Part shown: one piece after another, positions 6,986 through 29,266 of the stretch
Layout of the letters: each line of letters starts with the position of its first letter
How positions within the stretch are numbered: the stretch's first letter is position 1
NCBI GenBank assembly: GCA_054661495.1
Contig: BAAFSQ010000016.1
Coordinates: 30,001 to 62,000 of the forward strand
From: Zygophlyctis sp. KS116
Taxonomy: Eukaryota; Fungi; Chytridiomycota
Length of the DNA stretch: 32,000 bases
Direction: 5' to 3'
The notes under the pieces: generated by a model
Database searches by the model: none
Seen by the model: the letters and a program-made list of their open reading frames with translations, nothing else
What the model was told of the DNA's origin: nothing
Program-made: the position numbers and the translations under genes

Positions 6986-8589
6986 TTAAAATACTGCCGC
7001 CTCGCCAAACCTCTTTTTGAGCTCTGCTGCCGCCCAATCCCTGAACTCATTCTTTAACATTGCAGGGATTCCAAAAGTAGATCTTGCTTGATTGCCATGA
7101 ACATAGCGTAACGCACATTCTTCCTTGAAAGCATCCAATCCCCCCATTTTTTCAATCAAATATTCTTTGGCTCTATTCTTGAACTCTAGACGGAAATCTC
7201 TAGGAGTATCTGAATAAGTTGGCATAACAGACTCTAATACTCTAATAGTTTAGTAAAAAATAAATTTACTTATTGTATAATTCTAGTCCTGAATCATTTA
7301 CGACAGCGTGCTTAACATCAGTTCTAGACACTTTTCTGATTTGATCTGAAGATTCATCAGCCTGAATAGCCCTTTTTTCACCTCGCGGTTCTTTATCCAA
7401 TACAGCTTGAACACTCTTCATATACTTGAATTTTTCACAAAAAGAATCCAGAAAACTATCAGCCATTTCTTGAGGAATAGCCAAGACTTTAATGTCAACT
7501 CCAGGAACATTCAATTTACGCTCTTCCAAAGAATTACTGAGCACAAACGCTTTAACAAAGAGTGCAAATTGCGGTAGATTTAAATTCAAATCTGTAAACT
7601 TCTTTTCGACAATTTCAACCCAAGATATCCATCCTGGAAATGAAGCTTCCTTTGATATTCTCTTCTTTTTAGATGCACTTGACTTTTCTTTTTCAATTTG
7701 AACTTTACCAGATTCTCTTCTTCTTGGAGAGGCAGTCTAACATTAAAAATTTTAAATTTACTTTTCCTAAAATTCTTGCTTGCTCTTCCTTCCATTTAGC
7801 CAACGGACCTCTATCCAGCATTCCTTGCTCAATCTTTTCATCTAACCATTCCCCAAAAGTTTCTTGTAATTTTTCTGGAAGCGCTACAACAATCTTATTC
7901 TTTTCATTCAACACTTTACACTTTTTAACCTTTTCTTCTGGTATATTTTCCAATAAAAATTCTGTAAATGCTGCTTGTAATCTTTGTTTAGCAAGCATTG
8001 CCATTTGTCCCAAACTTCCTGGATGACTTTCTTTAATGACATCAGTCCATGAAATTAGAGTATCTCCGTCCAACTCTTCAAAAGCTTCTTCTTCCTCTTC
8101 TTTATCACTAGCCAGAGTCTTTTCTACTAGATTCTTTTTTGGAGAAACTCGCTTTGGGATAACCTCTTCAACCTCTGAAACAACTTCTTCGGCGTATGCT
8201 TCAGACGGAGTTTGTTCAGAATCTGAAAGAACTTCTTCCACAGACTCTATTTCCCTTGAAGTTTGCTTGACTCTTTCTGGAGAAACATGTCTTTCTTTAA
8301 TAGGAGAAACCTTTTTCTGTGCTGGTGACTGACTAGTTTTGACAGGACTTTTGGTTAAAACTTGAATTTCCGCCTGGTCTTCCTCTCCACCTTCCAATTC
8401 CTTAATTCTAGTGAGAAGCTTTGAAATCAGTTCATCCTTTTGAGCAAGTTTCTCATTGATTTGAACTCTACTTTCCAGTTCTTCAATGTATTTGTTCTTG
8501 TAGTATTCTACAGTCTCTTGCGATGACTTTGGGCTTTTCCCCGAAAACATTGAAGTTAACATTTCGATTTTCTCCGATCTGTAGGACAT
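6986..8589 (-). CDS. Novel family member A: coiled coil + 3 W..GIP..F..W modules
   Basis: YYKNKYIEELES coiled coil. Modules: ISWTDVIKESHPG...VALPEKLQETFGEW, ISWVEIVEKKF...LAIPQEMADSF and LYNKVLESVMP...TFGIPAMLKNEFRDW. Introns 7761..7737 and 7269..7242 restore the frame. Confidence 0.8.
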
Positions 8590-8629
8590 TATCTGCAGAT
8601 TCAATTTTTAATTTGTGATGTAAAAATGT

Positions 8630-8644
8630 AAAAAAAATTAAAAA
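8630..8644 (-). terminator. Putative RNA polymerase III oligo-T terminator of the tRNA
   Basis: T5 and T8 runs on the minus strand start about 7 nt after the tRNA 3' end. Confidence 0.55.
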
Positions 8645-8650
8645 GTAATT

Positions 8651-8723
8651 CGAGACCGGCAGGGTTCGAACCTGCGACCTTCTGGTTCGAAGCCAGACGC
8701 GCTACCGATTACGCCACGACCCC
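8651..8723 (-). tRNA. tRNA-Arg(UCG), intronless
   Basis: GGGGTCG-TG-GCGT AATCGGTA GCGC-G-TCTGG CT TCG AA CCAGA-AGGTC-GCAGG TTCGAAC CCTGC-CGGTCTC-G folds as a 73-nt cloverleaf with A and B boxes and anticodon TCG. Confidence 0.95.
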
Positions 8724-8870
8724 GATGAATGATTAAAATTTGCACTGCTATATATAGCAATATTATTTGCATTTGCACTTTTGCTAGTTTTGAAAAATCG
8801 AGTTGGATAGATACTACTGAGCTTCTTCAAAATGAATAAAATCGCTATTTATTCTTTTCAGTTTATATTC

Positions 8871-10240
8871 TTATAATTGTAGGAGAGCTGATAAAATCAA
8901 AGACAATGTTTCCTTAATTCCAAAATTTCCTATTCCGCTATTCGAAGAAGGAGGTCGAGTAGGATTAATTTTATCAGATCCAGATGACTGATTTTCTGTT
9001 ATAGAGATAGAAGGCTGATTTTCTATTATAGAGATAGATGGCTGATTTTCTATCACTATCATTGCATTAAAAAGTTCCATAGCATTAATTTGATTATGGA
9101 CATTTAAAGGTGGATTAGAATATCCAGGGAGCCAGAAATTACTGCAAGAAAATTCTGAATTGCATGTGGAATTCATTGCAACTGCAGAGGTAGACACCAA
9201 CTTTTTAATTGAATCCTTGATAGAGTTGTCATTACAGTTTTCGAATAAATGGAATAAACCTCTTATAGCAACACCTTTAAATTGTGGCTGATTTTCTTTA
9301 CAACCTCCAGATATTTCACATTGATCAGTTATAATTTCACGATCAGTAAAAACAGTTTGAAAATAAGATAAAACAATTTTAGCATCAGTCAAATATTTGA
9401 TATCTCCTGTGGCTTTGAATAACCATCCAGCTCCTGAAAGAAAAAGTCCTGAATTATAAGAATGCTGATTTTTTTCTATCTGCCAACACTGAGTAGCGTA
9501 TTGACCATCATATATTATTCCTGTATCTGTTACTAAACCAGACTCTTTTAGCCAATTGTACATATCAATAGAATTTTTCAAAATTGATTGATCATTGGTT
9601 AAAAGGAACAATCGTACTCCAAGAACTATTCCTTGAACATTTGAAATTGTAGACTTGTATAGACGATGATTGTCTATATTACTATTTCTATCACGCATCC
9701 AATAAATTCCACCTCCACATTCATTATCCCATTGAGAAAACATTTGATCAAAAGTATTTCTAGCTAATTGGATATACTTGACGCCATTAGGCATATTTGC
9801 ATCTGATCCTAATATTTCAGCTCCTCGAATTACTTGACTTTAACATGATTAAAATTACCTGCCAATCCGTACCATCCCAAATCATCATTCCATCGACCAC
9901 GAATCTGCCAGCTCCCATCAATTCTTGGTCCAATAAAAGATGCCGTCTCCCCAAAGGATGCATTTCCTAATGCACCACCAATCACATTAAGATAACGATC
10001 ATCTTTAGAAGTATAAGAATACTCCATCATTGCACCCCAAAACATACCCATTTCAAACCACTGGAATCCAGAAGAGGTTTCAGATTCAACAGGCGGAATT
10101 ACACCCATTTCGTTTGGAGAATAATATGCCATCAGATTATCAGCGACTTTTGCTGCTGCTTCCAAAATTGAAGCTTTGCTATTTATGGAGAATGCAGCAT
10201 TTGCCACTCTGATAGCCAACAGAAAGACAAAAAAATGCAT
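8871..10240 (-). CDS. Glycoside hydrolase family 76 (Dfg5/Dcw1-like), secreted, probably GPI-anchored
   Basis: Signal peptide MHFFVFLLAIRVANA, catalytic WNDDLGW, CGGGIYW, YKSTISN, IIYDG, SYNSGLFL, FKGVAIRGL, and an S/P-rich stalk with hydrophobic C-terminus. One 26-nt intron at 9858..9833. Confidence 0.9.
8988..9053. repeat. 27-bp coding tandem repeat (~2.5 copies; IENQPSISI) in the GH76 stalk
   Basis: ctgattttc recurs at 8988, 9015 and 9042. Confidence 0.85.
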
Positions 10241-10432
10241 TGGATGTGATAGACTTCAAGTCCCTAACCAAGTAAAAATCAAGTGCTTGGATTAAAAGAT
10301 CTACATGTCAAGGCTGTAGATGCGCATGTAAATTTGATTGCTTGTTAGTCACTGACTGATGGTAGACGACTATTTCCCCCACAAATATGCGATAGTGATG
10401 TCATCGTCACAGTTTCTCAAAAGTCTACGGAA

Positions 10433-11585
10433 ATGGACTCTAATAAGGTTTTAAAGGCGCTAGAAGATAAATGCAGACTGCAGGAACAGCTTAATGCTAA
10501 AAACGAAATAATCGCTCAATTACAATCTCAGATTTCCATACTGACGGCTTCAAGAAAGCTTAAAAGAAGAGTTTCTTTCAGTGATCTAGAATCGGCACTT
10601 GATGAAGATGACAGATTGCAATTCAGATCTACAATCATTAATGCTAAAAGTTTGTACTGTAGAAATATAAACTAATTGATAGATCAGCCTCCCGGAGCAG
10701 CCGATGGATCCATTCTGGTGCTAAAGATTTCAAAAATATAAGCATTGATGGAAAGAAGAGTTCTATTCCAAAATCTAAAAGATTGTCTAAAACTAATCTC
10801 AAGCGATCATCAGAGGGAAGTGATAACGGTATTGAAACTCTAATCTAAACTTAGAGCGTGTACCATATGAAACCAAGGTTGAGGAAATGGAGGGAAATCC
10901 AAATGAAAATATATCTCTTAGGTCAATAATTGAAGATCGGCATAGAGGAAGCTGGGGAGGCATGACTTCTCATCAAAAAATCTCGTTATACAATGCTACA
11001 ACAGCTTTTTTGAAATCTAATAATTTATCTGTAGGGGACAAATTACAAAAATTGGAAATGCCGCGAGCTTTCAAAGTCATTTTTGATGAATATCTTGATT
11101 TTGTAATAGATCAAGATATCTTTGCTAGTTCTAGATCCAAAAACAAAGAGGACAAAATTTCAGATGAACAGATTTTTAATGATGCATTGATTAGACTAAA
11201 AAAGCGCCACCAAGTGGATAGAGCGAATTCTTTAGCTAAAAAAGAATCTACTAAGAGAATATCATTTGGTAAATCTGAAGATTCAGAAATGTTATCTCTC
11301 TCTTCGAGAAAAAAGAGAAAAACTTCTCCAAAGCACCTCAACGGTCCAAAAAAATCGAATTTCTCAAATTTGAGAAATACCAAGAAAATATCATCTGATA
11401 ACAGTGATTTAAAATCAGCGAAAATCCATGCTAAAGCAAATCAGGGGCGAAATAGCCTTTTAGTGGCATCTGTCACAGAGAAATCTTTAAAAGCAAAAAA
11501 AGCCAGCGCAACTAAACTGAAATCTTCAAAATATGAGAAGCATCATGTTGATTTAAGCTCGCTATTCTCGTGGTTTTCCTCTTAA
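10433..11585 (+). CDS. Novel family member B (inverted): coiled coil + 1 module + long basic tail
   Basis: KVLKALEDKCRLQEQLNAKNEIIAQLQSQI coiled coil. Two short introns (~10655-10682 and ~10829-10854) link it to the module ISLRSIIEDRHRG...AFLK...LEMPRAFKVIFDEYLD. RKKRK is NLS-like. Confidence 0.7.
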
Positions 11586-11655
11586 CGAATTTGTAAAGAA
11601 TAAAACAATTTTTACCAAAAAATAGACAATATTTACAAGAGCTGCTATTAACCTC

Positions 11656-13462
11656 TTATTTATTTAGAATAGTTTGTTCATCATCAAAATCTTCTTCTTC
11701 TTCTTCCCTTTCAGGTGGTATGACTATAGTATTAAAGCTATTTTCAGCGTGACTTGCAAACCATAATTCGAATTCATCCTTTAGTATAGCTGGAATTCCA
11801 TAATCCCGTTGATCATCAGTCTCCTCGTCTTCAGAGTCAGAGTCATCTGAAAAACATACAAAACAGTGATCAGGTTCCAGGCCAGCTGGGAGTAGAGATC
11901 CATTCAAAAAATACTTTATCGCATTCCGTATTTTCCCCTCAAAATTTGAATCATTCAACAAATCATCAAATTCTGAAACAAACTTATCTTCAATTATATC
12001 CCTCCAATGGAATAGCTCTGTACCATTCAAAACTGCCTTCCTAAAAGGACGCATAACATGTTGAGAATCAGTAAATTTAAAAATCCCAGAATTTAATGTT
12101 GGAAATTGTTCTGGGACACGATTTTTATCTGCCAAAGGTTGTTTTTCTACGTCCAAATGTGCCGGTTCTACAACTTCAACACCTGATCTAGCCTTATCAT
12201 TAGATGTATCCAAAGAGAGACATTTTGGAATCTGCCAAGTGATTTTTGGATGAACTTTATTTCCTCCGTTTTGATGATAATGAAACATTGAAAGAAAAGA
12301 ATTAAAAAACTCTTCTTCTGTTTCAGAAGGAACACCCCATGCTGAATCTTTTTCAATCTCTGCCTGAACTACTTTGAATGCAATATTTCGAGATAGGAAG
12401 TAATCCCGAACAAACTCCTCGTGTATAAAACCTACTATAAATGAAGGAAATCTAATTCGAACTATTTCTAACCAGGACCTGAACTCTGGATAAACTAGTG
12501 CCAAAGAGTCTGGAAATTCTTGATATTCGTTCCCATGCTTCTATAATATAAAAAATAAAAAAATATTTTACAACTCCTAAAACAGGCTGCATTTTTGCAT
12601 TTCTTTTCTTCTCTTTCACTTTTGAATCTAATAGTCCAGCACCAATTCTTTCAGAAAACCAATCACTAAAATCATCTGCCCAATCTTCTGGAATAGCAAT
12701 CAAAGGTATTCCATTCTTATTTATAGCAGCACAATACATTATATCTCTCCAATGTAACCGTGTAGATAAGAAATCATGTACTGCTTGTTCGATTCTAAAT
12801 TTGTCTGTAAAATTTAAATGACTTAGAGATCCAGGATGCGTAGATTTAATAATTTCAGCCCAACATATTAACGACTCTTGTAATTGATTAGACCATGAAA
12901 CATATTTTGCTGGATCAATTTCAATTGGCGGTAATTCCTTTTCCTGTTTTGGAGTTGATTCTACAGACTTTCTGACAGGAGTCCTCTTCTTCTTTTCCAC
13001 TTCCTTTTTCCTGTCAACTTCTCTTTTTCTCTCCGCTTCCTTTTTCTTCTTGTTGACAGGATTCTTATTAATTTTAGAGCTTGAGAATGTTTTCTTTGGT
13101 ACAGAATTCTTGGGCGTATCGCTACAAACTTGCCTAGACGTTTCAGATGTCCTGGGTGTAACAAACTGGTTTTGATGGTGTTTGTATACTTTTGTATTAT
13201 GTTTTTCCTTTAAAGTTTTCCAATGATTTTCCATATGATTTTCCTGATGATTTTCCTTATGATTTTCCAGAGAGAATTCATATTGTGTAATTGTATCCTG
13301 CGTGCCTGTTAATTTTCCCTCTAATTCAGATATTTTACATATTTTCCTGGATATATTCTCTTCCATTGCAACAATTAATAGTGATTTTGACTCTACTTCC
13401 TGTCGTAACCTCAGAATATCTTCCAGCGTTGAAATATACTTGTCCTGATAATCAATTTTCAT
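11656..13462 (-). CDS. Novel family member C: coiled coil + 3 modules
   Basis: MKIDYQDKYISTLED. Modules: CWAEIIKSTHPG...AIPEDWADDFSDWF, SWLEIVRIRFP...WGVPSETEEEF and HWRDIIEDKF...YGIPAILKDEFELWF. Intron 12571..12541 joins the two ORFs in frame. An alternative ATG is at 13498. Confidence 0.8.
13223..13268. repeat. 12-bp coding repeat x4 (ENHK/ENHQ/ENHM/ENHW)
   Basis: atgattttcc recurs with period 12. Confidence 0.8.
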
Positions 13463-13501
13463 TTTAAAAAATTTATTTTCCCAAAAAAACTCCATCATTG
13501 G

Positions 13502-15415
13502 CTAAAATAGCCGTTGTAATTCCTCTCTAGCCCAATCAAGGAAACTAGACTCTAGAAATTTAGGAACTCCAAAAGTTGTAAACATTGTATCATGTGCACG
13601 GGCCTGTAATTTACACAATTTTACATTTTCAGATCCCAATCTACCTCTAAGCCATTGAAGGACATTCTTCTTCATTATAAGACGTTTATCCTTGTCTTGT
13701 GTATTGTAATTTGGCATTAAAATTGTAAGTAATCTGTACATTTAGTAAAAATTAGTTATTACGTATTGTATCTAGTCATTGGAGGCTCTTTTTTAGGAGA
13801 TCCATTAGTGATAGAATTGTTGTTCACAATTGTTAAATCTTTGGTACTAGGAGCAGAGACTTGATCAAAGGAGGGAATGATGTTTTTCATTCTTTCTGGT
13901 AACACAGGATTTTGAGGTAAATCTTGAAAGGTTATAGAGTCTTTAATACTAGGCTCTAAAACTTCTTCTTGCTGAGAGTTTGAGAGAGAAGGATAAAATC
14001 TTGCTGTAAAGTCTTTCACATATTTATCCATCAAATTTGGTGGGATTCCCATTGATGAATGATTACCAACAGAGACAGATTTTGGAGATATTCCATTTTC
14101 TGTACAAAAGTTCATGGTAAATGTGATAAAACGTTTTTCTACTCCAATTTCTTTATCAAGACGCTGTTTTAAGAGTAAATCCCATGGTATCCATCCTTGG
14201 GTTGACTTTGATGATTCCAATACAGATCCAGAGACTCTATTGAAAATTTGGCTTTCTAAATCACGCATTTTTAGAGATTCATTAAATGATTTAGGAATAT
14301 TTTTAGAGGGAAGATCATAGCCTGTAGATTCCATTAATTCATCAATATCATCCAGAGCATTATTTATAATAATAGGACTCTTTGAAATTTCTTCTTCTTG
14401 GACTGATACAACATCATTCTCCTGAATGGGTTCAATTACCATACTTTGACCAGACTCCAGCTCTACCTCTTCTATTTCATCCAGTACAGATGGTATTATT
14501 TTCATGGTAAACCTTTGTTCAGTTTGAGGAACATAATCAGCCTTGTCTGACTCTAATTCAGACTCTGTATCACTAATTTTAGGAATATGTTTCTTTTTTT
14601 GATATTTCTCGACTACCTTTTCTTTAAAAGACAATTCAGGAGCTTCTTTCTCCATACTATCTTCATCAAAGAGTTTAACAAGTGCTGGATCTACTTTTGG
14701 GCTTTCTATTATTTGATTTGTAATAGATTTCCTTTTCAAAGGAGATCCAACCTCATCCTTGTTCTTTAACCTGAAAAATACTTACAACTTTAAAAACTCT
14801 CTTCTTCTTCTTAGCCTTTGGAGAAGAAAAAAGCCCTTCATCAATCTTTCGATCAAGATAATCATTATACTTGTTCACAAATCCCTTTGGAATATGTTCT
14901 GGATCAAGTGGTAGTTTGTATTTTTTCTGGAAATGTATAGTAGTATTTTTCAATTGTGTTTTTTCTCTGTTTGTGAGCATTCCAACAGTCCCAGAATGTC
15001 TAGAGTCTATTATAGAAGTAAGAGGAATCTGTTCTGCAAGATCTCCATCTGTTTCTGATCCTGAAGAGTCATAGACTGAGCTTTCCGAATCTGAATCTGA
15101 AACTAATTCTATTCTTCTTTTCCTAATTTCTCCTCTTGTTTGAACTAATTCTCTTCTTCTCAAATCTATTTCACCTCCAACATTTGTTTCTCTTCTTTCC
15201 TCTATTCCATCCGTCGTATGAGCTAGCTGCCCAGTTGAATAAACTATTTCTCTTGTTCTGTTGATCCTCTCTTGTTTCAAGTCTGGCAAGTTTGGCTTCA
15301 ACAGCTGAGCCTTGAGATCGATCACTTCACTCTGCAATGAGTTGACCTTGCCTTGAAGAATGATCTTATCGTTCAACAGTTGAATGTATTTGTCCTTGTA
15401 ATATTCAATGCTCAT
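13502..15415 (-). CDS. Novel family member D: coiled coil + 3 modules
   Basis: MSIEYYKDKYIQLL. Modules: IPLTSIIDSRHSG...HIPKGFVNKYNDYL, WIPWDLLLKQRL...MGIPPNLMDKY and RYNTLLTILMP...TFGVPKFLESSFLDW. Introns at 14785..14764 (22 nt) and 13762..13734. Confidence 0.8.
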
Positions 15416-15483
15416 AAATTTATCAGCCCAAGCCTCAAACATTCCAAATCAAAGCCCTCACACGGCAAAATTCCATTAAATAC

Positions 15484-17561
15484 TTAAAATATGTCTACAG
15501 CAATACGTTCCCAGTCCTGAAGTGGGACGTTTTCAATTCCATACATTCCCCGCAACAATAATATTCCCCATTGTTTAAAGCCAGCATGCCATTCAATAGG
15601 AATTCCAAAAGTTGAGATAATATTGCCAGAATCAGATTCTACAGAGATTATATTTTCCAACAGTCGTGCACTAGAGCCTAATTTTTGAGAAATATATCCT
15701 TCAACGTGCTTTTTAATTGCTTGGCGATCACTTATAGGAACAGAACTAAATGTCGGCATTAGACCTGAAAGAAGACTAGTCGTTAAATAAAAAATATTAC
15801 TCTGTATAAATTGTTAAACTTGTTTTTTCATTTTCTGTACAAGGAAATACCATGGGAATATCAGAAAGAACATTAGTTGAAAAATAATCTTCAATCAGAG
15901 GTTCAATAGCAAATGGACTGGGTTCTACTGGGAAATTATGAATAAAGTTTTCAAACTCTGCATCTGATTCTTCACTAGTGCTTGGAGCAGTTTTGATATT
16001 CTTTTTTGGTTTTGATTCAGAAGAGGTTGGTTCTAGAGAATGTTTTAGAGATTCGCTAGATTCATTTACTTCATAGTCTTTAAATCCACGTCTATAATGT
16101 AATTCATACCATTCATAAAACTTTTCAACAAGTGAAGATGGGATCCCAAATGAACTGCGTCCTCCATGATATGATCTTATTTTAGTATCATCCTGGGAGA
16201 AATTAGTGGCATTTTTCTCCAAAAAGTCTCTTAATCCAGTCATAATATTATCAAACATAATGGTCCTAGGATCAGATAAAGCTTCATCTTTAAACTTATC
16301 CATTGCTAGATCCCTCCAACAGAAAAAGTATTCATCATTAATTTTTTTACTAGAAATACAAGGATTATTTACAAGCTCCGCGATGAGTGGTGATTCTTGT
16401 TCCTGACCAGAAAGATCCTCCGACATTTTTTTAATAAAATCATCTGAAAATCCGGCAGGAATTCCCACGCATAATATTGAATTAGAGCTCTTGGTCTTTT
16501 TCTTTGGAAGCTTTTGTATTTCAAGAAAATCATCTGCAATTTGAGACATTTTAGTCAAGTCTATTGACACATGAGGCATTCGACTTTTCACAAGATCAAT
16601 CCATGGAACAAATTCATTATAATTTTGAGAATTCTAAATATTACAAAATCAAACCTACATTGGGACTTTCTAAATTGTCGTCAGACATATCTATCGTAAT
16701 CAACTGAGAATTTCTCCTAGATTTTCCGTTATTTTCTTTCTGAGAAGATGAAGAGCTTGATTTTGATTTGACTGTAGGTGTACACAATGGCGTCTTCTTT
16801 TTTATATTTTGAATCCTTTCTACAGTTCCGTCCACGACCATTTTCTCAAAAAAATCTTCAAATTCTAAAGCTAATTCATCCGGTATTCCCCATGTATATG
16901 CACCATCTCTATAGATATAGCATTTATGATATGCAACCTTGTCTAAACGATCATCTATTGTGTAAAGACTTTCACACTAAATCTTACCCAAGAATTCCAA
17001 CACATATTTTTCCCAAGAGCTATGATTATGAGGTTTAAGTAATTTAGGGTGATTTTGCTTTACAATTTTAGCCCATGCTACTAACTTATCATCATCCAAA
17101 TCTATTTTCTCCTGATTACTATGTTCCGATGGCGTGTCTGACTCAGAGTCTGAAGACAGATCATACTGACTAAACTGCTGATAGTTGAATGGCTTCTTCC
17201 CCGACACTTGCGACACTTGACTTTGATTAACAGAAACTTTTGGTTTAGATTCAGCGAAATCGGATGCCGGATTGTTCCTGCAATTATTTAAACTGATTGG
17301 TTGCTGTTCATTAGTCTGTCTAGAGTCCAGCTCTTCCAGCACCGATGAATTATGCAAAGGAGCAATAGTATGATGAGTCTTTTGATGGTGAAAAGACACT
17401 GTACAATGTGGACATTTGGAGGTTTCTATTGTGTTTATATGTTTTAACAAATCATTATTAATATTCTCCTGTTCCCTAAGCTGTGTCTGTAGAATAGTTA
17501 ACTTCTCAGTGAGGGAAATTCTCTCTTCAAGTCCAATCATGTATTTTGTTTTGAAATCCAT
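15484..17561 (-). CDS. Novel family member E: coiled coil + 4 modules
   Basis: MDFKTKYMIGLEERI. Modules: VAWAKIVKQNHP...TWGIPDELALEFEDFF, VPWIDLVKSRMP...VGIPAGFSDDF, FCWRDLAMDKF...SFGIPSSLVEKFYEWY and IYTDLLSGLMP...TFGIPIEWHAGFKQW. Introns at 16987..16955, ~16658..16634 and 15800..15776. Confidence 0.82.
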
Positions 17562-17594
17562 CTCTGGGGAAATTTACTTTTTTTCACGGCGGCG

Positions 17595-19385
17595 TTAACG
17601 CTCCCATTCGGCCAACGGCACTTTTTCTCCATACTCTTGTCTCAGCTGTACCAATGCCCATTTCTGAAAATCTAACAAATTCTCCCTGGGTACTCCATAC
17701 GATATCTTGACTGATCCATTCTTATCCTTCTGCAACAATTTACAGTCTTCCAGTGATCCAACATTTTCTAGTAGATACTCCTTTACAGAGTTACGGAGTC
17801 GAGCACGAGAACTTTTGGGCTGTGCGTTGAAGTCTGAATACAAATCTTTTAGAATTCTAATTTTTAGATTGGAAAAAATAAATACATATTATATCGAATA
17901 ACGTTTGATTTTGATTTTTTAACGCTATTACTAGGGATACATAGTCCTTCATTGATAAGAATATTATCATCTGCATCTGATTCTTGTTTTACAGCTGAAA
18001 CATTTTCTTGACTCTTTAAACATGTTTCATTATTGATTTTTTCAGAGTTCTGATCAGTAACTATATCCAGACATTTAAATCTAGATGCGAATTCTTCTTT
18101 AAACCAAGATTTAAAAGTAACTTCAAAAGGTTTGGGAATGTATAATATCTTTTGATTATCCATTTCCTCAAAAGATAGTCCGATTGAAGGATAATTATCA
18201 GTTAAAAACTTTTTAACTGCAGATTTTGCACGTTTATATAGCTCTTTATCACCCTTCATAGCTTTAACAGCTTCTGGTAAGAAAGAATTTAGCAAATCCA
18301 ACCAAATATACATAGTTATTCCTTTTAGTTTTATTTCTTTTAGACTCGTAAGTGGAGAAAATCTTTTCAAGCGAGATTCGGCGGCTTTATCAGATCTGAC
18401 TGGAGAATCATTTACATCCTTTTTAGAAGCAGAAAAAACTTCCCGATGATACTGGTCAGAAGGTAGTTTTGCTATAAGCCTTGGAGAAAAACTGTTTGAC
18501 GAGCTTGACAATTTTTCAGATCTTTTCGGAGTCAGTTTTCTTGATGAGACTTTTACAGTATCTAGTTCAAATTGATTTGATTTAAAATCTGCTTTTGTTG
18601 ATTTTTCAGAGGATGAATCATTTTCAGTTCCATCATAAACTACTATTCTCCTTGCGGGAGAATACTTTTTCCTTAAAGACCTTCCCGTCCGTCTTTTCCC
18701 CATACTCTCAGAAGTGTCAGAATCCACCGTTGAAACCGTCCCTGTTAAAATAGGCTCATCTATTTCCATTGGAATAACGTCCAACTTTACAGGTTTATCC
18801 ATTGAATCATCTTGTTTTACAGGTACTATTGAAGTTGAATCTTTTACATGTACATGATTATTTTCTTCTAATAGACAGGATCCTAGGATCTTAATCTAGA
18901 CATAAACTACCTTTATGCAGTCCTTTCTGCCACAAATCACTAAAGTATGCTGCAAATTCCACATGAAATTGTGTAGGAATCCCATAATAAAGTTTGCCAG
19001 AGGAGCAATCAGATTCGACTTTTTCTAAAACTAGATTGCGATCAGTGATAAATGTTTTGACAGCAAGATCATATAAATCAGGATTATCATTAAAAGATTT
19101 AAAGTATTTCCTGACAACATCCAGCCATGAAACAGTTTTCTCCTCGGCAACAACATTTGCAGAGATCCCAAGCTTTCTTTCCAACTCTGCAGAGTATTTG
19201 ATCAATGATTCCAACTGAGCGTTCTTTTCCTCCAAAACTCTAATCATTGTATCTCTCTCTTGAGTAATCTTTAACTTCTCTTCCAATGCAGCAATATATT
19301 TTGCCTGATACAATGAGTCTTGATCGGTTTCAGGACTTTTGGTTTGGCTGGAAAAGCTCAATGCTCTGGATAATATGTCATTCAT
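17595..19385 (-). CDS. Novel family member F: coiled coil + 3 modules
   Basis: LYQAKYIAALEEKL. Modules: VSWLDVVRKYF...YYGIPTQFHVEF, YIWLDLLNSFLP...LYIPKPFEVTFKSWF and RYNIILKDLYS...SYGVPRENLLDFQKW. Introns at ~18910..18883 and 17885..17857. ATG 19385 was chosen because the gene G stop is at 19396. Confidence 0.8.
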
Positions 19386-19395
19386 CGGTTCAAGA

Positions 19396-22300
19396 TTAGG
19401 GCTCCGGATCAGATTTATTAACACACAAATCTTGTAATAACTCGCTAATCCATTCATTAAAAGAGCTTTCTAGCATTTTTGGAATTCCCAATGTAGCAAA
19501 CAATTGTCCAGAAGGAGTTCGTGTCCAAATAACACATTCATTAGCAAAACTTTCACCTAACTTAGCTACTAACCATTTCTGCACTTGATCTCGGATTTGC
19601 ATTCTGGCTAATCTTGGAGCTTTACTAAAAGATGGCATAATGCTTAAAATCAGACTGCAATTTAAATTATAGAATAAAATACCGTGTATATCTCTTCAGA
19701 TCATGTAGATCAGCCAATGTAGTAGCAGAAAGAGAATCTGGCTTCTTTAGAGTTATTTCTGGTTCATCATCAGAACTATCATCAATGATTATTCTTTTTC
19801 TGGGAGGAGAAATGACAGTTTTTGGTGTAGCTTTTGGTGTGACTAAACCGCCTTGTTTTCTAAGTGGGCTATTTTTCGATTTTATGAGTTTTTTGGTTTT
19901 TTGATCATTTTTTGATTTTATTTCGGGAGTTTGAATATCATGATTATCAGAGATTTTAGGACTTTTCTTGTTTTCCTGATCATTGGAAGGTTTCGTCTAT
20001 CTTTAAAATAAATAAACTTACACACTTGATGCTTTTAGGAGTTTTAGTATTAATAATGATCAAATCGTCATCATTTTCTTGCTCTTCTATAATCTTTTCA
20101 TCTTTATTGGCAGCTGTATTTTTCTCGAAAGCCAAAATGTTTTCTGTTTTATCATCATCAGCTGTCTTTTTTTGATCATTTATTGATTTTATTTCAGGAG
20201 TTTGAGTGTCATGATTATCAGAGATTTTAGGACTTTCCTGGCTATTTTGATCATTGGAAGTTTTCATCTATCTTTAAAATATAAAAGCTTACACATTTGA
20301 TGCTTTTAGGAGTTGCAGTATTAATGATGATCAAATCGTCATCATTTTCTTGCTCTTCTATAATCTCTTTATCTTTATTGGCAGCTGTATTTTTCTCGAA
20401 AGCCAAAATTTCCTTATTTTCTAATGTGTCATCATCAACATCCGTAACATCCGTTTTAGTTTTTTTCGCAGTGTCATTCAAGATTGTAGACTGATCAGAT
20501 TTTCGTTTCGAGATCTTTGAAAGAATATTAGATAGATCATTTTGCACAATATTACGCATTCTAATGAATCTTCTCAAGGACTCTGTTACTTCTCGAATTA
20601 GACTCATGATAAGTCCACATTGTGATCCAAAGGCTTCGTCTATATTCAGAGACAGAGAAAGTTCCCAAATTTGGAATGGCACCTGTTCTACGCCAAATTT
20701 TTGCCTTAAAAATGAAACAGCTACCTTTTTGAAGGATTGTTCAAGATTTGCAGGGATGCCTAGAGTTGTCGCGGATTCTTTTTCAACCTTTCGAATAATT
20801 ATGCATTTATCCGCCCCTTGTTCCCCAAGTTTAGATACTAAAAATTCACGTATTCTGCCTTTAAACTGGATTCGAATTGATCGAGATATCTTATTATAAG
20901 ATGGCATTAGTTGAAGTAAAATACTAAAAATTTAATCAATATAGTTTTACCTATTATATCGAATTAAGTTCTGTGGCTTTTCATTAAAGATTACTGGGGG
21001 GAACTCCTTAATTTTTATTTCTTGGTCTAAAGCTGTAACAACTTCAGAATCGCCCGAATCTTTTTCCTTGACGCGCATTTGATCTCTACAAAAACGTTCT
21101 CTTTTTGGAGATTCATCATCCAATGATAATTTTGCACCTGCAAGTTCTTTATTGCTATTATTTTGAGCATGGTGGTTTACATCCCCTTTCTGGTCAGTCA
21201 TAATCCCTTCATTTAACTCAAGAACTTCATTTGATTTGACAGCTTCATTTATCTCCACGACTACATTTGACTCTACAACTTCATTTGATTTCACACCTTC
21301 ATTTGATTGCATAACTTCATTTGACTCAACAACTTCATTTGACTGCATAAGTTCGATTGACTCAACACCTTCATTTGAATCCACAACTTCATTTGACTCA
21401 ACAATATTTTCCAATTCTTGTTGTTTATTTTCCCCTATTTTGATAAGTGGAAAGATAAACTTACCGGGTAAGTAACTACCAAAAAGATTTTTCTTTAAAT
21501 CTGAAAGGTTTGAAGGAGGCATATATGACTGTATAGAAACAGCATCCGGGGAGCAATCTGGAGTAAGCTCTACGGGCGAACCTGGAGGAGAAACATTTGC
21601 TTCAGCGGCATTCCTAGCTGGAGTTAAGTTAACAAAATCATCATAAGTGGAACTTATGTCTGCATTGGCCGGTATGTTCACATCGCAATTATTAGCACTT
21701 GAATCTACAGCCTCTTGTTCTGTATCTTGTTCATCCGCTTTAGAGAATGCTTCATTTGAATCTATGATTTCAGACTTTTTGTTACTTGGATCTATTACAA
21801 CTGTTGCATTCTGCTCAGAAGTTAAATCAAGAGGCTGTGATTCATCTTTTCCAGGCTCTGAGAGCCAAGAAAAAGACCAAATAGGAGATGGAGGAGGTAA
21901 AGATTCAAACGCTCCGAGGAAATTGTTTTCACTAACGGCGGTAGATTCGTCATTTTCCACATTATCTTTTTTCGTATTTTGCGGATTAAACAGCTGGTCT
22001 AGTAAGCCTGAAATTTCTTGTGAGTTCAAATCATCTTCTTCAGATGCTCCATTGAAAGCTGAATGTTGCTTAAGATTAAGCCCACTTTCTATTGTGTCCG
22101 CTGAATCTAAATATGCATCGAATCCAGTTTGTAATTTAGCCTTAAACCATCCCATGAATTGTGATTCCAAAGATATGGGAATTCCAAAGGTTTTAATACT
22201 ACGAGTCGTAGAATCAACAATGCAATCAGCTAATTCAATTTTAAGTTTTCCAATATTTTCAGCAACAAACTTTCCAATAGACCAAGAAACATTTTTTTCT

Positions 22301-23232
22301 AGTTCTAATGATGACAAGATTTTTGTCATTTCAAGGGGAAATATGGCATTACATATATCCGGCCAGGCAGTAATTTTCATGGAGTTTCCCGTATTTGTTG
22401 TAGGAGATAATATAGAGCCTTTAGGAGTGCTATCTTCCGTCTGATTCATATCATTTTGATTCATTCTTGGAAACTTTCTAAAGAATTCTTCGAGAAATAC
22501 GTCAGTAAGTTGATCCGGAATACAAAGTTTTGATGAAGAAGAAGAAATTTTGTCCTCATCTCTTAATTGTTCAATCGTATCAGCATGATGAGCCAGAAAG
22601 GATTTGGCAAAATGTGAATGAATACTTTCTACCCTATAAGTTGGCAACTTTTGTCGAATTGTTTCAGCCCAAGTTCTCCAAATTGAAACCGGCTTATTTT
22701 CAGGTTTTTTCTGAAATTTTATATTTATATAAAATACCTTTTTTGAAGCAGGAGAGTTCTTTTTTTTAGGAGTAATTTGAGTTATCTTTACCATTTGTCG
22801 TTTTAACCAACTGATAAAAGGATCAACAAGCCTTGAGGGTATTCCATATTCCTGATTCGGCAGTTGAAGCTTCTTAATTTGATCAGAATCTAACTTTAGA
22901 CGCAAGAAATCCAAGACACTTTCCTTGAGTTGCTGCTTCTTCCGCAGCGTCAAATCATTAAATGCATTAGCGAAATGCTTGATCACCAAATCCTTCCAAT
23001 AAATTTGATCATTGTTAGCAGGCTTTTTTAACTTCTTTGCCTTTGCTGGTTCAACATTTCCTAGTTTTCTTTTTTTTGAATTTTTCTTCAGGATCTGGAT
23101 CTCTTCCTTCTTTTTCTCTATTATTCCTTCAAGCGATGACAATTCTCTGTGGAGCTCAACAAGCTCTTCTAGGCCATCCAAATATCGTTGTTGGAAAGAT
23201 CCTGTAGCGCATGAAGGTGCAACTTTAGTCAT
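19396..23232 (-). CDS. Novel family member G: coiled coil + 5 modules, with internal repeats (possibly a fusion of two paralogues)
   Basis: FQQRYLDGLEELV. Modules: IYWKDLVIKHF...YGIPSRLVDPFISW, RTWAETIRQKLP...LCIPDQLTDVF, TAWPDICNAIF...TFGIPISLESQFMGWF, RYNSILLQLMP...TLGIPANLEQSF and RYTRLILSIMP...TLGIPKMLESSFNEW. Introns at 20950..20924, 20292..20268, 20021..19997 and 19682..19655, plus probable in-frame introns at 22737..22711 and 21464..21435. Confidence 0.75.
19902..20410. repeat. Intragenic tandem duplication, period 271 bp, including a 25-nt intron in each copy
   Basis: tgatcat at 19902/20173 and gccaaaat at 20131/20402. Both copies encode ILAFEKNTAANKD..IIEEQENDDDLIIINT.TPKSIKC. Confidence 0.93.
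21206..21403. repeat. 18-bp coding minisatellite, ~11 copies (SNEVVE hexapeptide)
   Basis: Degenerate acttcatttgactcaaca units translate as VESNEVVDSNEGVES...KSNEVLELNEG. Confidence 0.9.
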
Positions 23233-23247
23233 TTAATCAGTCAGAAA

Positions 23248-23288
23248 CGCGAAAAGCACACGAAAAGCACACGGTTAAGCACACGAAA
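23248..23288. promoter_or_regulatory. Cluster of three SCB-type elements (CRCGAAA) embedded in AAGCACACG direct repeats upstream of gene G
   Basis: CGCGAAA at 23248-23254, CACGAAA at 23259-23265 and CACGAAA at 23282-23288. Confidence 0.55.
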
Positions 23289-23359: not shown

Positions 23360-26300
23360 CTATCCACCTTTTAAAATCTTATCAATCATTTGGTTAATAT
23401 ACTCTCTTTTCGGTTTAAGATCAACACCATTGAATTTAACAGATAGATTTTCACGAACCTGTTTCTTGGTCAGTGTCATGAGATCAGCAGTAGTCAGAAT
23501 ATTGCGAATTTCAGCGAGAATTTCGTTATCGCTCGGTAGAGCTGAAGTTTCTTTCATTGGTTGCATTGGAATAGATTGGGGACTGGGTTGAAAACTGTTG
23601 CGGTTCTGTATCGCAGCAGAATGTGAAAACATTGACATACGATTATTTGGTGAAATCGCTGCTATAGGCATTGATTTTTCAGTTGAAGATAGGCCTAAAG
23701 GAACTGAATTTGTAGATTCAGTTGCTGCGGATGTAGCAGATCCTACTTCCCATTGTTGATTAAGAGAAGCTTCATGTTCTTTCCAAGTTTTTAGAGGAAT
23801 TGATGATGGATCAAACTATTAATTTAATGATATTTTTATATATTACAGGCTCGGTATCTGCTAGATATAACATTTTCTTTCCTTCTCCAACTACTACACG
23901 GGTATTTCCCCATGAAAAATCATCAAAATGCCAAAAAGAATATATAGGAATCCAAAAACTAGAGTTAGCAAACTGATTGAAAGTTACGAAAATAATGGAA
24001 GTGCCAATATATAGAATAACATCCACATAATATGCTGCCATTCTCCCTTTAAGAGAAATATTATCACTATATATTAAAATTGTACTATTACCTTGAAGAC
24101 CATAAACTGCTGCAATCACAATAATAGAGATCAATGGAAAATTTTCTGTAGATGTAGTAACAGCGTATATCAAATATCCCAAGTACAAAACAGCTGCTGG
24201 TTGAATGAAGGTAGCTAACAAATCAATCATGACTACAAAACGCATGCTAAAGCAGCAGAATCCACAGAGCTGTCCCAAGCTCGTTAGTTCAATCAAATTA
24301 TGAACAGTAGAGTTAATCCATCGACGTCTTTGAGATAAAAGGACTGACCAAGATTCCGGAGCTGATGTACTACATCTGGCATCATTAATGAAGCAAGTTT
24401 TCATTTGAGGGAAATGTTTGAGAACCAATGTTGTCAGATATCTATCTTCTCCCAAGTGTAGAAGATTTTTTAAATGTAGTGTATCGACATTATTTTCGGC
24501 ATATTCTGAAAGAACTTCGTTAGAAACTAAAACTGGCATATTTTTTGCAGCAGAACGAATTCTATACATACAGAAACAACCGGGAAGACATGTAACTGTT
24601 CCAAACAGCGATTCAAATGCCTTCGATAAATTATGCGAAATAAAGTATTCATAAACCTGGATCATAGTCACCCAAGTCGTCTTATCGTTTGATATTTCCG
24701 TTTCCCCACACAAACCTACCACCTTTGAGTCATTCACCATATACGATATCATTCTATTTAAGGAATCAAACTGCACCTCCGTATCAGCATCCACCATAAG
24801 TACAAATTCATAGAAAGTTGGGTTCACACCAATAATATTCTTCAGGTGATGATAAAGTGTTATTTCCATAGGAGATAATCCTGAATTAAAGTGAACACGA
24901 TTGAAGAATCTCATAAGCACTAGTTGTGAATCTCTTTTTCCACGATTTCCCGGCTTGGTACGTTCTCCAGGTCCACCAACCTTAACAACAACAACAAATG
25001 GTACACTATGCCCCCTAATTTCATATAGTCCAGAGTAAATTTTAGCCATGTTATATTGCTTGTTTCCTTCTCCTATAGAATTGAAAGCTTGAGGTTCTGG
25101 ATCAATATTTGGGTCTACACCTAAAATATCCAATACAATCCGAGGAGTAGGGCGATCATTACCCGCCCCGACAATCATTCCATCGCAAACAACAAAAAGA
25201 AGTTTTCTTTTATCATCATAATTAAGGATCGCAAGTGATTCTAATGTCTTTGACAGCGAATCCTGTCCCTCGGTATAACAAGGAACCATCATGACTGCAA
25301 ATTTATCACTTTCGTCAGGCTCTATATGAGGCGAAAACCTTAATGCAGCTAAAAATTTAAATACAATGACAGAAGCAATAACAATAGATGCAGAAAGTAG
25401 CAAATAATTCGATAAAATACAGGACAAAGTATTTCGATTATCCAAAATGCCAACATAATAGAAATTATTCAAGCATCTAAGAGTGGCCCTAGCCAAAGAT
25501 CTCTCTAATTTCATGAATGCTTCCGTTGCATTTTTATTTCCTTTCGTGCTAAAGGCTTCCCTAAGACCCTTAAGATTATTATCAGCAGCCAAAAGCAAAT
25601 CAGCAGTTGTTGTATCATAAACGTTATTAAATATATAATAATAGTTCTAAAAAAATTAAAAACGCTTAACTTACCGGAGGTAGGCTTTCTTTTGACCAGC
25701 CAATATATCCTTCTGCATAGTTGTTCAATTTACCGATAACTTGAATTGAATTGCCATTACTTTCATTAAATCGATGCGTATAAGCCAAATCAGGCTGACG
25801 CTTCTTGATGCTATTCGTATCTTGAGGCAAATAATCCCAGGATGGATCTTGAGGTCTTTGTAAACTACAATAAGATCCAAAAGCATCCTGCTTATAAAAC
25901 AAACGGCTGACATCAACACCGAAGAACGCATCAAGATTATATTTGGCAATGTTCTGTTCCCCTTTAGCTGCTGCTGGAATGCTTAAATGAAAGTTTCTTA
26001 TCGGCTCAAAATTGTAGTAGCGACCATGTGAGCTTACCCATTTTGTGCCTTCCAATTCAACGGATGACTTTATATTGAGAGGAGGACAGATTATATATCT
26101 TAAACCAATAATCAGAAAGATTAGAGATGCATTCATTAGAAAAATGATGATGCAGAGTGCTAACTTCTCCCTCCATGCCATACGAATATCCGGTCTTTTC
26201 ATTTTTCCACAAAAAATCAAGAAAGGTGAAAATACCCACCAAGTAAGAGCCCATGTAATACAAACCCATGTTTTTCTCTTTTTAGAAACTTTAGAAACAG

Positions 26301-28790
26301 ATGCTACAGTTCCTGCTTGCTTTTTTGATTCGCCTGTTTGTTTTGAAATAATATCTTCCCGGATTGTAAGCTTTCGTAATTTTTTAGAGTCTCCGAAATC
26401 AGAATCAACTTCCGAATGAATATCATCGTCATTATAAGCAGAGCCATAATCTGATTCGTTATCATGACTCGATTCCATGCTAGCTGATTTCGATTGGATT
26501 CTAAACCACTTCAGTTTCGAGTCTGACAAGTAAATCTGTGTCCTGCCAAGAATCATTTCATTTGCTCTCCAATGCAGTGATGCGGAAATGCGATCTAATG
26601 CGGTACCAATTCCCTTATTCATACTTTGGTATTTTGATACGACTGCCCCAAACTGTGATTCAAAACTTTCATAAGAAATTCCAGGGAAGGCGACATTAGC
26701 AAATGCACGGCTTGTGGCGATTGCCAGTATAGAAAACTCCTCAATTTTCCGCCTTAACAGAGATAGAGTCAACCTCTTTGCATTTTTTTCGAATGGGTTG
26801 ATGCAGAAAACATTGTAGACTTTAGTATGAGACAAGCAAACCATTAAGTCATCCATTGAATTAAGATGGCTTGATATAGTTGTCTCTTTGATAGCTATGG
26901 ATTTCTTATCATTGCCACCTTTGCGTTTCATAGAAGGATTTCTTTTTAGTGTAGAATTCAAATGGGCAGAAACTATGTTTCCTTTGTGTAATTCAGTCTC
27001 AACACCAGCTGCAGATGAAAATAAAGATGCCAAAAAGGCAGAAATGCTGATCATTGAATCATTTTCTTCACCTACAGATGCCATATCTCCTGTATTTTTT
27101 CGAAACAGGACGATAAAATCTGATGAAATTGTTTCAGTATTTTTGATTTGGAAATCATTAACCGAATATTCAACTTTGGCAAAGTTATGTCGAATACCAA
27201 AAACAAACTGGCTTGAAGATGAAGTACAGCGGGAAGGAGGAATGTAGACAGGATCCTTTGAAAAACGACTATTCAAAGCACTTAAAATCATTTCTGAAGA
27301 GTGGTTTGTGCAAGTTTCTTCATTTATAGCAGCCAATAATCCGTTAGGCCCAGTAAAAAAGTTCAAAATTGGGGAATGATCAACACACGATATTTCTGGA
27401 GGGTTTAGCTGTTCAGACTTAAAAACGGCCAGTCTAGACATAATCAACTTAGAATCCATAAACTGTGAGATCCTCTCGAATGAAATATTTGAGCAAAACT
27501 CATAGAAAGACAGAGGCCGTGTTTCTGATTCAATTAGGGCAGGAAAGTCTAGAATCCCAACAAAATTATCTACTGCGGTTTCTTCCTTACATAAACGATC
27601 ATTAACTCTTCCTAAGATCCAAGAGAAAAGATGTGAATAAAGAGCTCTAGCCAATTCATCTCGACGAGCTGTGCTCTCATCTAAATTAAGAATTTCTGAA
27701 CAGAATTCATTGCCAATCACTTTAGTCTTGAATGTCAACACTGACTGAAGAGCCGATTCTGTGACTCCTAACAATTTTGAAGCACATGAAAGGGTTTCAA
27801 TATTCTTAATTGTAGCGGGCTCTTCAGTATTCAAAGGATTCTCAACAAACTGTAAATTTCCTAAGTGCAGAATCGCGGCAACAACCTGAAAAATAAATGT
27901 TTGAATCCTCCTTCCTATCCCAATGGATTTTAAGTGCTCGCGTAACTCTCTCATGTTTTCAATATCTTGAACAGTAACAACTGTACCGGTCCCACCAAAA
28001 CCCATTTTCCGCCCTAATGTACCCCTTCGCTTTCCAGACTGCAAATAAGAGTAAAGGTTTGTATCCGATTCTAAAAACATTGCATTCCTTTCATCAGCTG
28101 ATAAACCTTTACGATCAATTAAAATGTTGTTTACCACCAATAACTTGATAAAAGATATTGAAATTTCTTTCACCATCAGGAAGCGACTGATAAGAAGTAA
28201 CTCTACTTTTTTCAAGCAAATAGTCCAAAGTCTTAACACCAACCATTCGGCCTGATCTAGAGAATTGATACTCAGAATATAATGCAAATCGTGAAGAATT
28301 AACACTGTTGAAAACTTGAGCATGTCCAAATGATTGTAAAATAGTTTGCATCTTGATGGCACCAGTTAAAACTTTGGAATTCTTTTTAGCATTTGTACTC
28401 AAAGCCACCAAGTGTTTAACTATTTGCTTTCTTGCATTGGATTTTCCCGATCCATTCCCTCCTCTTCATATAAGTCATTATTTAATCTTACCGCATCACA
28501 ATTGTTTGATCTTGTTGAGTATGAATCATATCCACAAATGCAGTACTAGTCAATTCTAGCAAATGAGCTGTGACATTCACATCCACTTTTTCTGGCATTG
28601 ACCATTTTTCATCAGCAGACTGAGCATAATACAATGAATCTTTAGAATCCAAATCTGATGAAGGATTAACTGCAATCAAAACATCTGAGCCGACCCAAGT
28701 ATATCTTTTCTTTGCTTCTAGCCTTGATGCAATGGTCCCTACTATTGAATCTATATCAATGCTAGTCAGATATGATATATCTTCGTTCAT
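23360..28790 (-). CDS. Division-2 chitin synthase with N-terminal myosin motor-like domain (class V/VII type) and C-terminal DEK_C
   Basis: Myosin motifs [32 protein letters not shown] and ILHLGN. TM segment [10 protein letters not shown]2 motifs [38 protein letters not shown] and [16 protein letters not shown] motif [16 protein letters not shown]. Confidence 0.96.
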
Positions 28791-29209
28791 TGTTCTTTAT
28801 TTGTTGAATGCGAACGCCACAATTTTGCCTCGGTTGAATTTCTTCTGTATATATAATGCATTATCCATCAGACATTAGAGATAAATTATAACTATCATGT
28901 GTCCTTTTCATTGATCAATGATGCTGTGGAAATATGAGTTTTATTATTCGTTTTTTTCTGATGGTAATTGGTAGATCAACCGGATAAAGATTGTTGAGTA
29001 TGCTTTAAGTCTATTCTAATCGAAGTTTCCATACTTTGGACAATTTAATTGATGGACAACGCATATTGGAAAAAGATCTTTTTAAGCTCACTGAAAGGAT
29101 AATGCCATTTCAAGTCTATTTAGGATTGAATGAATATATTTGCAAGTTTAATGGCCTAAAAAAATATCCCAGGGCGATTTTACTTTTTTCAATCAATTTA
29201 AATAGTTGT

Positions 29210-29249
29210 TTACGTCAGATCACAGCGCGTGAAATCCATATTGACGTCA
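29210..29249. promoter_or_regulatory. Two CRE-like bZIP sites in the divergent chitin synthase promoter
   Basis: TTACGTCA at 29210-29217 and palindromic TGACGTCA at 29242-29249, with GCGCGTGAAA between them. Confidence 0.4.
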
Positions 29250-29266
29250 GACAAATAAATATAATA

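Follow-up and report, generated by a model that had tools for sequence, protein, structure and literature searches.

Seven divergent genes with a shared module architecture

We analysed a 32,000-nucleotide (nt) stretch of the chytrid Zygophlyctis sp. KS116 (the window; contig C16:30001-62000 of a 12.7-Mb, 1175-contig assembly), in which seven genes, A to G, encode proteins of one architecture: an N-terminal coiled coil followed by copies of a ~75-amino-acid (aa) module, separated by disordered, charged, S/T-P-rich linkers. Database homology searches were run with single exons or existing proteins, and the spliced models were compared only with fetched sequences. The window is 34% GC. Splicing out GT-AG introns of 25-33 nt closes all seven predicted gene models, and most of these introns are backed by orthologues that keep the position with a different or unrelated intron sequence. 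G, F, E, D and C run head to tail on the minus strand; gene B has the opposite orientation, and A lies beyond a GH76 gene and a tRNA-Arg (Table 1). All seven proteins match a coiled-coil profile made from other proteins (11-40 bits, G being the weakest), and identity among the paralogues is just 18-36%. An earlier reading of the letters alone (the original prediction) had proposed seven genes of shared architecture, about 22 modules at one to five per gene, a coiled coil in each protein, five genes head to tail and highly diverged copies, all of which was borne out.

A motif scan and a hidden Markov model (HMM) search of the six-frame translation found exactly 22 modules at 7001-23007 (3, 1, 3, 3, 4, 3 and 5 in genes A to G) and none in the rest of the window. 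As predicted, the modules align to each other: in a leave-one-out HMM test, 15 of the 16 seeds exceeded all 500 shuffles (15-57 bits versus shuffle maxima of 4-11). The one seed that failed is the degenerate module of gene B, placed sister to D's first module in the module tree (99 SH-aLRT); gene B is an inverted, truncated relative of the 5′ part of D. Both this tree (95 modules, 85 columns, quick method; class support 80-97) and class-specific HMMs that exclude window sequences divide the modules into four classes in the fixed order M1-M2-M3-M4. A phase-2 intron cuts the start of M4 at an identical codon in the window and five other genera. Taken together, these results show that the ancestral protein was coiled coil-M1-M2-M3-M4, with four paralogous ~75-aa domains.

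Metagenome contig L031 keeps the order chitin synthase-G-F-E-D at about 55-60% identity, and L041 does so at 93-96%; L033 keeps D-C-B, L034 keeps GH76-A, and gene order and content are identical across all related loci. The ratio of nonsynonymous to synonymous substitution (dN/dS) is 0.06-0.27 in modules and 0.22-0.63 in linkers, versus 0.03-0.15 in chitin synthase. Since intron positions recur, starts and stops are kept while spacers vary, and dN/dS is low, A-G are seven separate, functional genes. Each window copy has lost or gained modules and has been retained by purifying selection. A single giant read-through protein G-F-E-D-C is unlikely, because the orthologues keep stops, starts and N-terminal coiled coils, yet the spacers differ in length and sequence between window and orthologues (10/84, 33/63, 68/55/79 and 40/58 nt).

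Table 1. Positions of the family genes and their neighbours in the window
Feature	Position	Strand	Product	Introns	Remarks
Gene A	6986-8589	minus	516 aa; coiled coil-M1-M2-M4	7761-7737, 7269-7242	L034 orthologue adjoins GH76
Gene B	10433-11585	plus	~365 aa; coiled coil-one degenerate M1-basic tail	10654-10682, 10829-10854 (both uncertain)	Orthologues in L032/L033
Gene C	11656-13462	minus	591 aa; coiled coil-M1-M2-M3	12571-12541	Intron position matched in L033
Gene D	13502-15415	minus	~618 aa; coiled coil-degenerate M1-M2-M4	14785-14758 (acceptor uncertain), 13762-13734
Gene E	15484-17561	minus	~664 aa; coiled coil-M1-M2-M3-M4	16987-~16955 (acceptor uncertain), 16658-16634, 15800-15776	Full ancestral set; orthologues in L031, L041
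Gene F	17595-19385	minus	~578 aa; coiled coil-M2-M3-M4	18907-18883 (donor uncertain), 17885-17857
Gene G	19396-23232	minus	~1234 aa; coiled coil-M1-M2-M3-M4-M4	22737-22711, 20950-20924, 20292-20268, 20021-19997, 19682-19655
Probable eighth relative	2018-2503	minus	Family coiled coil, then acidic tail; no module		Coil profile 23.2 bits, E 2.5e-6
Chitin synthase	23360-28790	minus	Myosin motor and DEK_C tail		Conserved neighbour outside the family; marks ancestral site
tRNA-Arg(TCG)	8650-8724				Between A and B
GH76 gene	8871-10240				Between A and B

The spacer from the G stop to the F start (19386-19395) measures 10 nt in the window versus 84 nt in L031, and either the F promoter must lie inside the coding end of G or the two transcripts must overlap. 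We rejected operon-like spacing as a special trait, as dispersed members also lie 16-68 nt from unrelated genes and short spacers are normal for this genome. The L031 orthologue of G is without the 20950-20924 intron, so that the joined reading frame is visible. The linkers of G carry two recent internal repeats, a 271-bp duplication (19897-20409) that copied an intron and an array of 18-bp units (21188-21421). In D, the first intron (14758-14785) apparently needs an AAG acceptor, in the window and in L033 alike. Three SCB-like heptamers just upstream of G (23248-23288) are kept in the close relative L041; we discounted them as meaningful sites since they belong to a short tandem repeat and are missing in the distant orthologue L031.

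The probable eighth relative has a coil score as high as genes C-E and might act as a dominant-negative partner. Two further members lie elsewhere in the genome, one on contig C85 (coil-M1-M2-M4) and the other on C153 (coil plus two modules). In the L034 orthologue no tRNA-like sequence was found in the 130 nt before A, and in another relative a Ty3/Gypsy element (L032:4113-8459) directly adjoins gene B where the window carries GH76. The chitin synthase beside G is one of two with myosin motors and DEK_C ends that stand head to head (window 23360-32000, L030:1-2800).

Distribution of the family and origin of the cluster

The profile search suggested by the original prediction retrieved 211 of 1.84 billion representatives at an E-value of 0.001 or lower. 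Many are 400-1800 aa long with 2-8 modules, and across the family the module is repeated 1-8 times. Named members, all hypothetical proteins, come from Rhizophlyctis, Borealophlyctis, Synchytrium microbalum, S. endobioticum, Polychytrium, Blyttiomyces, Siphonaria, Podochytrium, Physocladia, Obelidium, Rhizoclosmatium, Phlyctochytrium, Zopfochytrium, Quaeritorhiza, Fimicolochytrium, Globomyces, Boothiomyces, Entophlyctis and B. dendrobatidis; none from outside Chytridiomycota appeared among the thirty clusters looked up, which cover part of the range. The family occurs in every chytrid order sampled. It is chytrid-wide and ancient rather than lineage-specific as first proposed, a label that suits the cluster alone.

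Neither accessions nor topic led to a description of the family in the literature, and a homologous-protein search returned near-self matches only. What is new is the domain, together with its four-class architecture across the phylum; the cluster per se is ordinary tandem duplication. Little has been described of gene regulation in chytrids, and it is inventoried by Pfam domain, so that a family without a Pfam signature stayed invisible. Its members include proteins of B. dendrobatidis, which infects amphibians, and of S. endobioticum, the agent of potato wart. As a defined 75-aa domain with a confidently predicted fold, the module lends itself to direct expression and testing, and the gene numbers of chytrids, from one to seven, form a natural series.

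In six cultured chytrids, a single family gene is present within 10-kb flanks. In Entophlyctis helioformis, one gene lies 2.7 kb downstream of the orthologous myosin-chitin synthase (up to 75% identity) on the same strand, a position suggesting that one ancestral gene beside that synthase was amplified locally. The cluster looks like an old, ordinary local tandem duplication; a transposon origin was set aside, as terminal repeats are absent around it. Clustering probably arose more than once, because Siphonaria sp. JEL0065 has a separate cluster with other neighbours (at least four family genes in 16.5 kb; L043:4154-20519). One model there, HDU68_008640, resembles two fused gene models (M2-M4, then M1-M2-M3-M4).

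Predicted fold and function

Two confidently predicted models have the topology strand-helix-helix-hairpin-helix (DSSP), and each module is predicted to fold as a small winged helix like phage antirepressors, KilA-N/APSES, Dachshund and MerR/Xis-like domains. The domain is unrecognised, as the original prediction had it: none of 148 modules matches a Pfam or PHROG profile, no module match was found by PDB sequence, Foldseek-PDB or BFVD, and ESM feature searches returned nothing at 0.9 or above. A match to MRE11 (E 0.02) consists of two fragments out of order and was dismissed as chance. The nearest Atlas structures are phage DNA-binding families.

Clues to function come from fused domains. A Rhizoclosmatium protein reads coil-module-glutamine-rich-GATA finger-basic tract-module, and BED/C2H2-like fingers lie between modules in Siphonaria and in one unnamed protein. 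On lake-metagenome contigs from an uncultured chytrid-like lineage, an eight-module frame ends in the SUV420H1/Set9 N-terminal helix and, after a 36-nt intron, continues into the SET domain, a fusion to a Set9/SUV420H H4K20 methyltransferase (L092:3675-7446, also L093; P0082, P0158). The module-Set9 fusion is conserved, because a second protein, only 34% identical to the first, ends alike. In a review of fungal SET proteins, the Set9 group is given no additional domain (PMC9692433), and the Set9 of the Zygophlyctis genome (contig C83) is without modules. An ankyrin fusion (P0030) was not used as evidence, being a single model that starts mid-module and is perhaps mis-joined.

Family proteins carry basic tracts resembling nuclear localisation signals (NLS-like). 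Hydropathy revealed no signal peptide in 89 homologues or the seven window models, and no member checked has a membrane helix. The signal peptide or translocation header expected of a secreted effector family, Crinkler-like or other, was thus not found. The B. dendrobatidis gene has no SignalP call, and its expression, higher in culture than during growth in the host (PMC5364385), speaks against a role as an infection effector.

Collectively, these results suggest that the proteins are probably an undescribed family of nuclear DNA- or chromatin-binding regulators, in which coiled-coil dimers would carry several different winged-helix modules to chromatin or DNA and act as regulators of transcription. 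Helix 2 carries class-specific conserved Arg/Lys/Asn/Ser, the hairpin also has Arg/Lys, and the last helix (helix 3) is acidic, a pattern that would fit a DNA-facing surface. Helix 2 would read the major groove, the basic hairpin would serve as the wing, and the acidic helix 3 would point away. Through the coil, paralogues with different module sets could pair with themselves or with each other, giving homo- and heterodimers whose target arrays differ and which would regulate transcription or recruit chromatin enzymes. DNA binding, dimerisation and nuclear location are what we infer: the winged-helix-like topology foreseen by the original prediction is supported by the models and the nuclear role by the fusions, the basic tracts and the absence of signal peptides and membrane helices, and of its dimerising nucleic-acid-binding regulators the coiled-coil dimerisation is plausible, DNA binding being the deduced part. 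Several points weigh against this interpretation: M1 is neutral in charge, structural scores against Dachshund/MerR/Xis are not clearly above background and lie within the range of chance arrangements, and function is assigned from structural matches that are weak and from a small number of fusions.

The modules could alternatively form a nuclear protein-interaction scaffold that binds histones, corepressors or other proteins and reaches DNA only via fused fingers or partners, on the model of the Ski/Dachshund domain, which acts largely by protein binding. The structural match to Dachshund and the neutral M1 favour this, and the GATA and Set9 fusions suit an adaptor equally well; we nevertheless consider it unlikely, given that other DNA-binding domains are absent from most members, that conserved basic residues lie on helix 2 and the wing of M2-M4, and that the Atlas neighbours are DNA-binding families. 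It is distinctly improbable that these are RNA-binding repeat proteins of the LOTUS, PheRS B5 or IF2-N kind that control ribosomes or stored mRNA in settings such as the translationally silent zoospore. The weak structural neighbours of the module include PheRS B5, IF2-N and eIF2D, and RNA-binding proteins typically have small multi-copy domains set in disordered linkers, but the fusion partners found are chromatin/DNA domains (GATA, BED-like, Set9), and a scan of about 85 proteins found none fused to an RRM, KH, helicase or nuclease domain.

The very divergent clustered regulators with coiled coils, and the independent second cluster in Siphonaria, also recall a mating-type or self/non-self locus analogous to mushroom HD1/HD2, whose paralogues would heterodimerise via the N-terminal coils; we know of no identified chytrid mating-type genes. 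This is very improbable, since synonymous divergence (dS) from one close relative is 0.045-0.10 in the cluster versus 0.053-0.063 in the adjoining chitin synthase, N-termini are 88-96% identical to that relative, gene content and order are the same at all related loci, and the six other chytrids are single-copy within 10 kb. Least probable of all is a cytoplasmic scaffold for wall synthesis or cytokinesis, held beside the myosin-chitin synthase for co-regulation, which has in its favour the linkage conserved to Entophlyctis and the GH76 gene within the cluster, and against it the absence of that linkage from Boothiomyces, Globomyces, Synchytrium, Polychytrium, Rhizophlyctis and Siphonaria, the NLS-like tracts and the chromatin fusions.

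Comparison with known systems

Basidiomycete HD1/HD2 clusters likewise hold clustered divergent regulators with N-terminal coiled coils. Unlike them, the chytrid cluster has no homeodomain gene, no divergent gene pairs and, in the one comparison made, no sign of balancing selection. Dachshund/Ski and MerR/Xis-like domains (pSK1 Par, RacA), grouped in SCOP in a ‘putative DNA-binding domain’ superfamily, share the strand-helix-helix-hairpin-helix topology of the module, which differs from them in a longer second helix and has no sequence similarity to them.

KilA-N and the fungal APSES and SBF proteins (Swi4, Mbp1, PCG2) also lack a sequence match: none of the 148 modules matches PF04383, and HHalign probability is below 1%, although the controls, pairs of families known to be related, likewise failed with alignments as shallow as these. 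The module is without their N-terminal hairpin and is repeated, and the four true KilA-N loci of the genome are all separate from the cluster. The viral KilA-N origin of SBF/APSES (PMC4862756) is a precedent for a tentative and rather doubtful extension of the regulator reading, namely that an antirepressor winged helix of viral type was recruited into fungi a second time, independently, in chytrids, founding a phylum-specific transcription-factor family whose paralogues would combine via coiled coils, control chytrid-specific development (the zoospore-to-thallus switch, sporangial cleavage or sex) and be able to aim H4K20 methylation. No viral relative was found by sequence, and the module was absent from phage records, viral contigs (searched for close relatives only), BFVD and 301 genomes of one bacterial phylum.

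The phage antirepressor-type domains Bro-N, ORF6N, Rha and AntA have the same predicted fold, with template-modelling (TM) scores of 0.53-0.64 for a Synchytrium M2, and of 0.53-0.58 by the query, both sides being predicted models of a short domain; the M1 model failed to retrieve them. HHalign gave the modules a probability <6% against them, the same controls having failed. Like the module, these domains are used modularly in several contexts; unlike them, the chytrid module is encoded in intron-containing genes and follows a coiled coil in four fixed classes.
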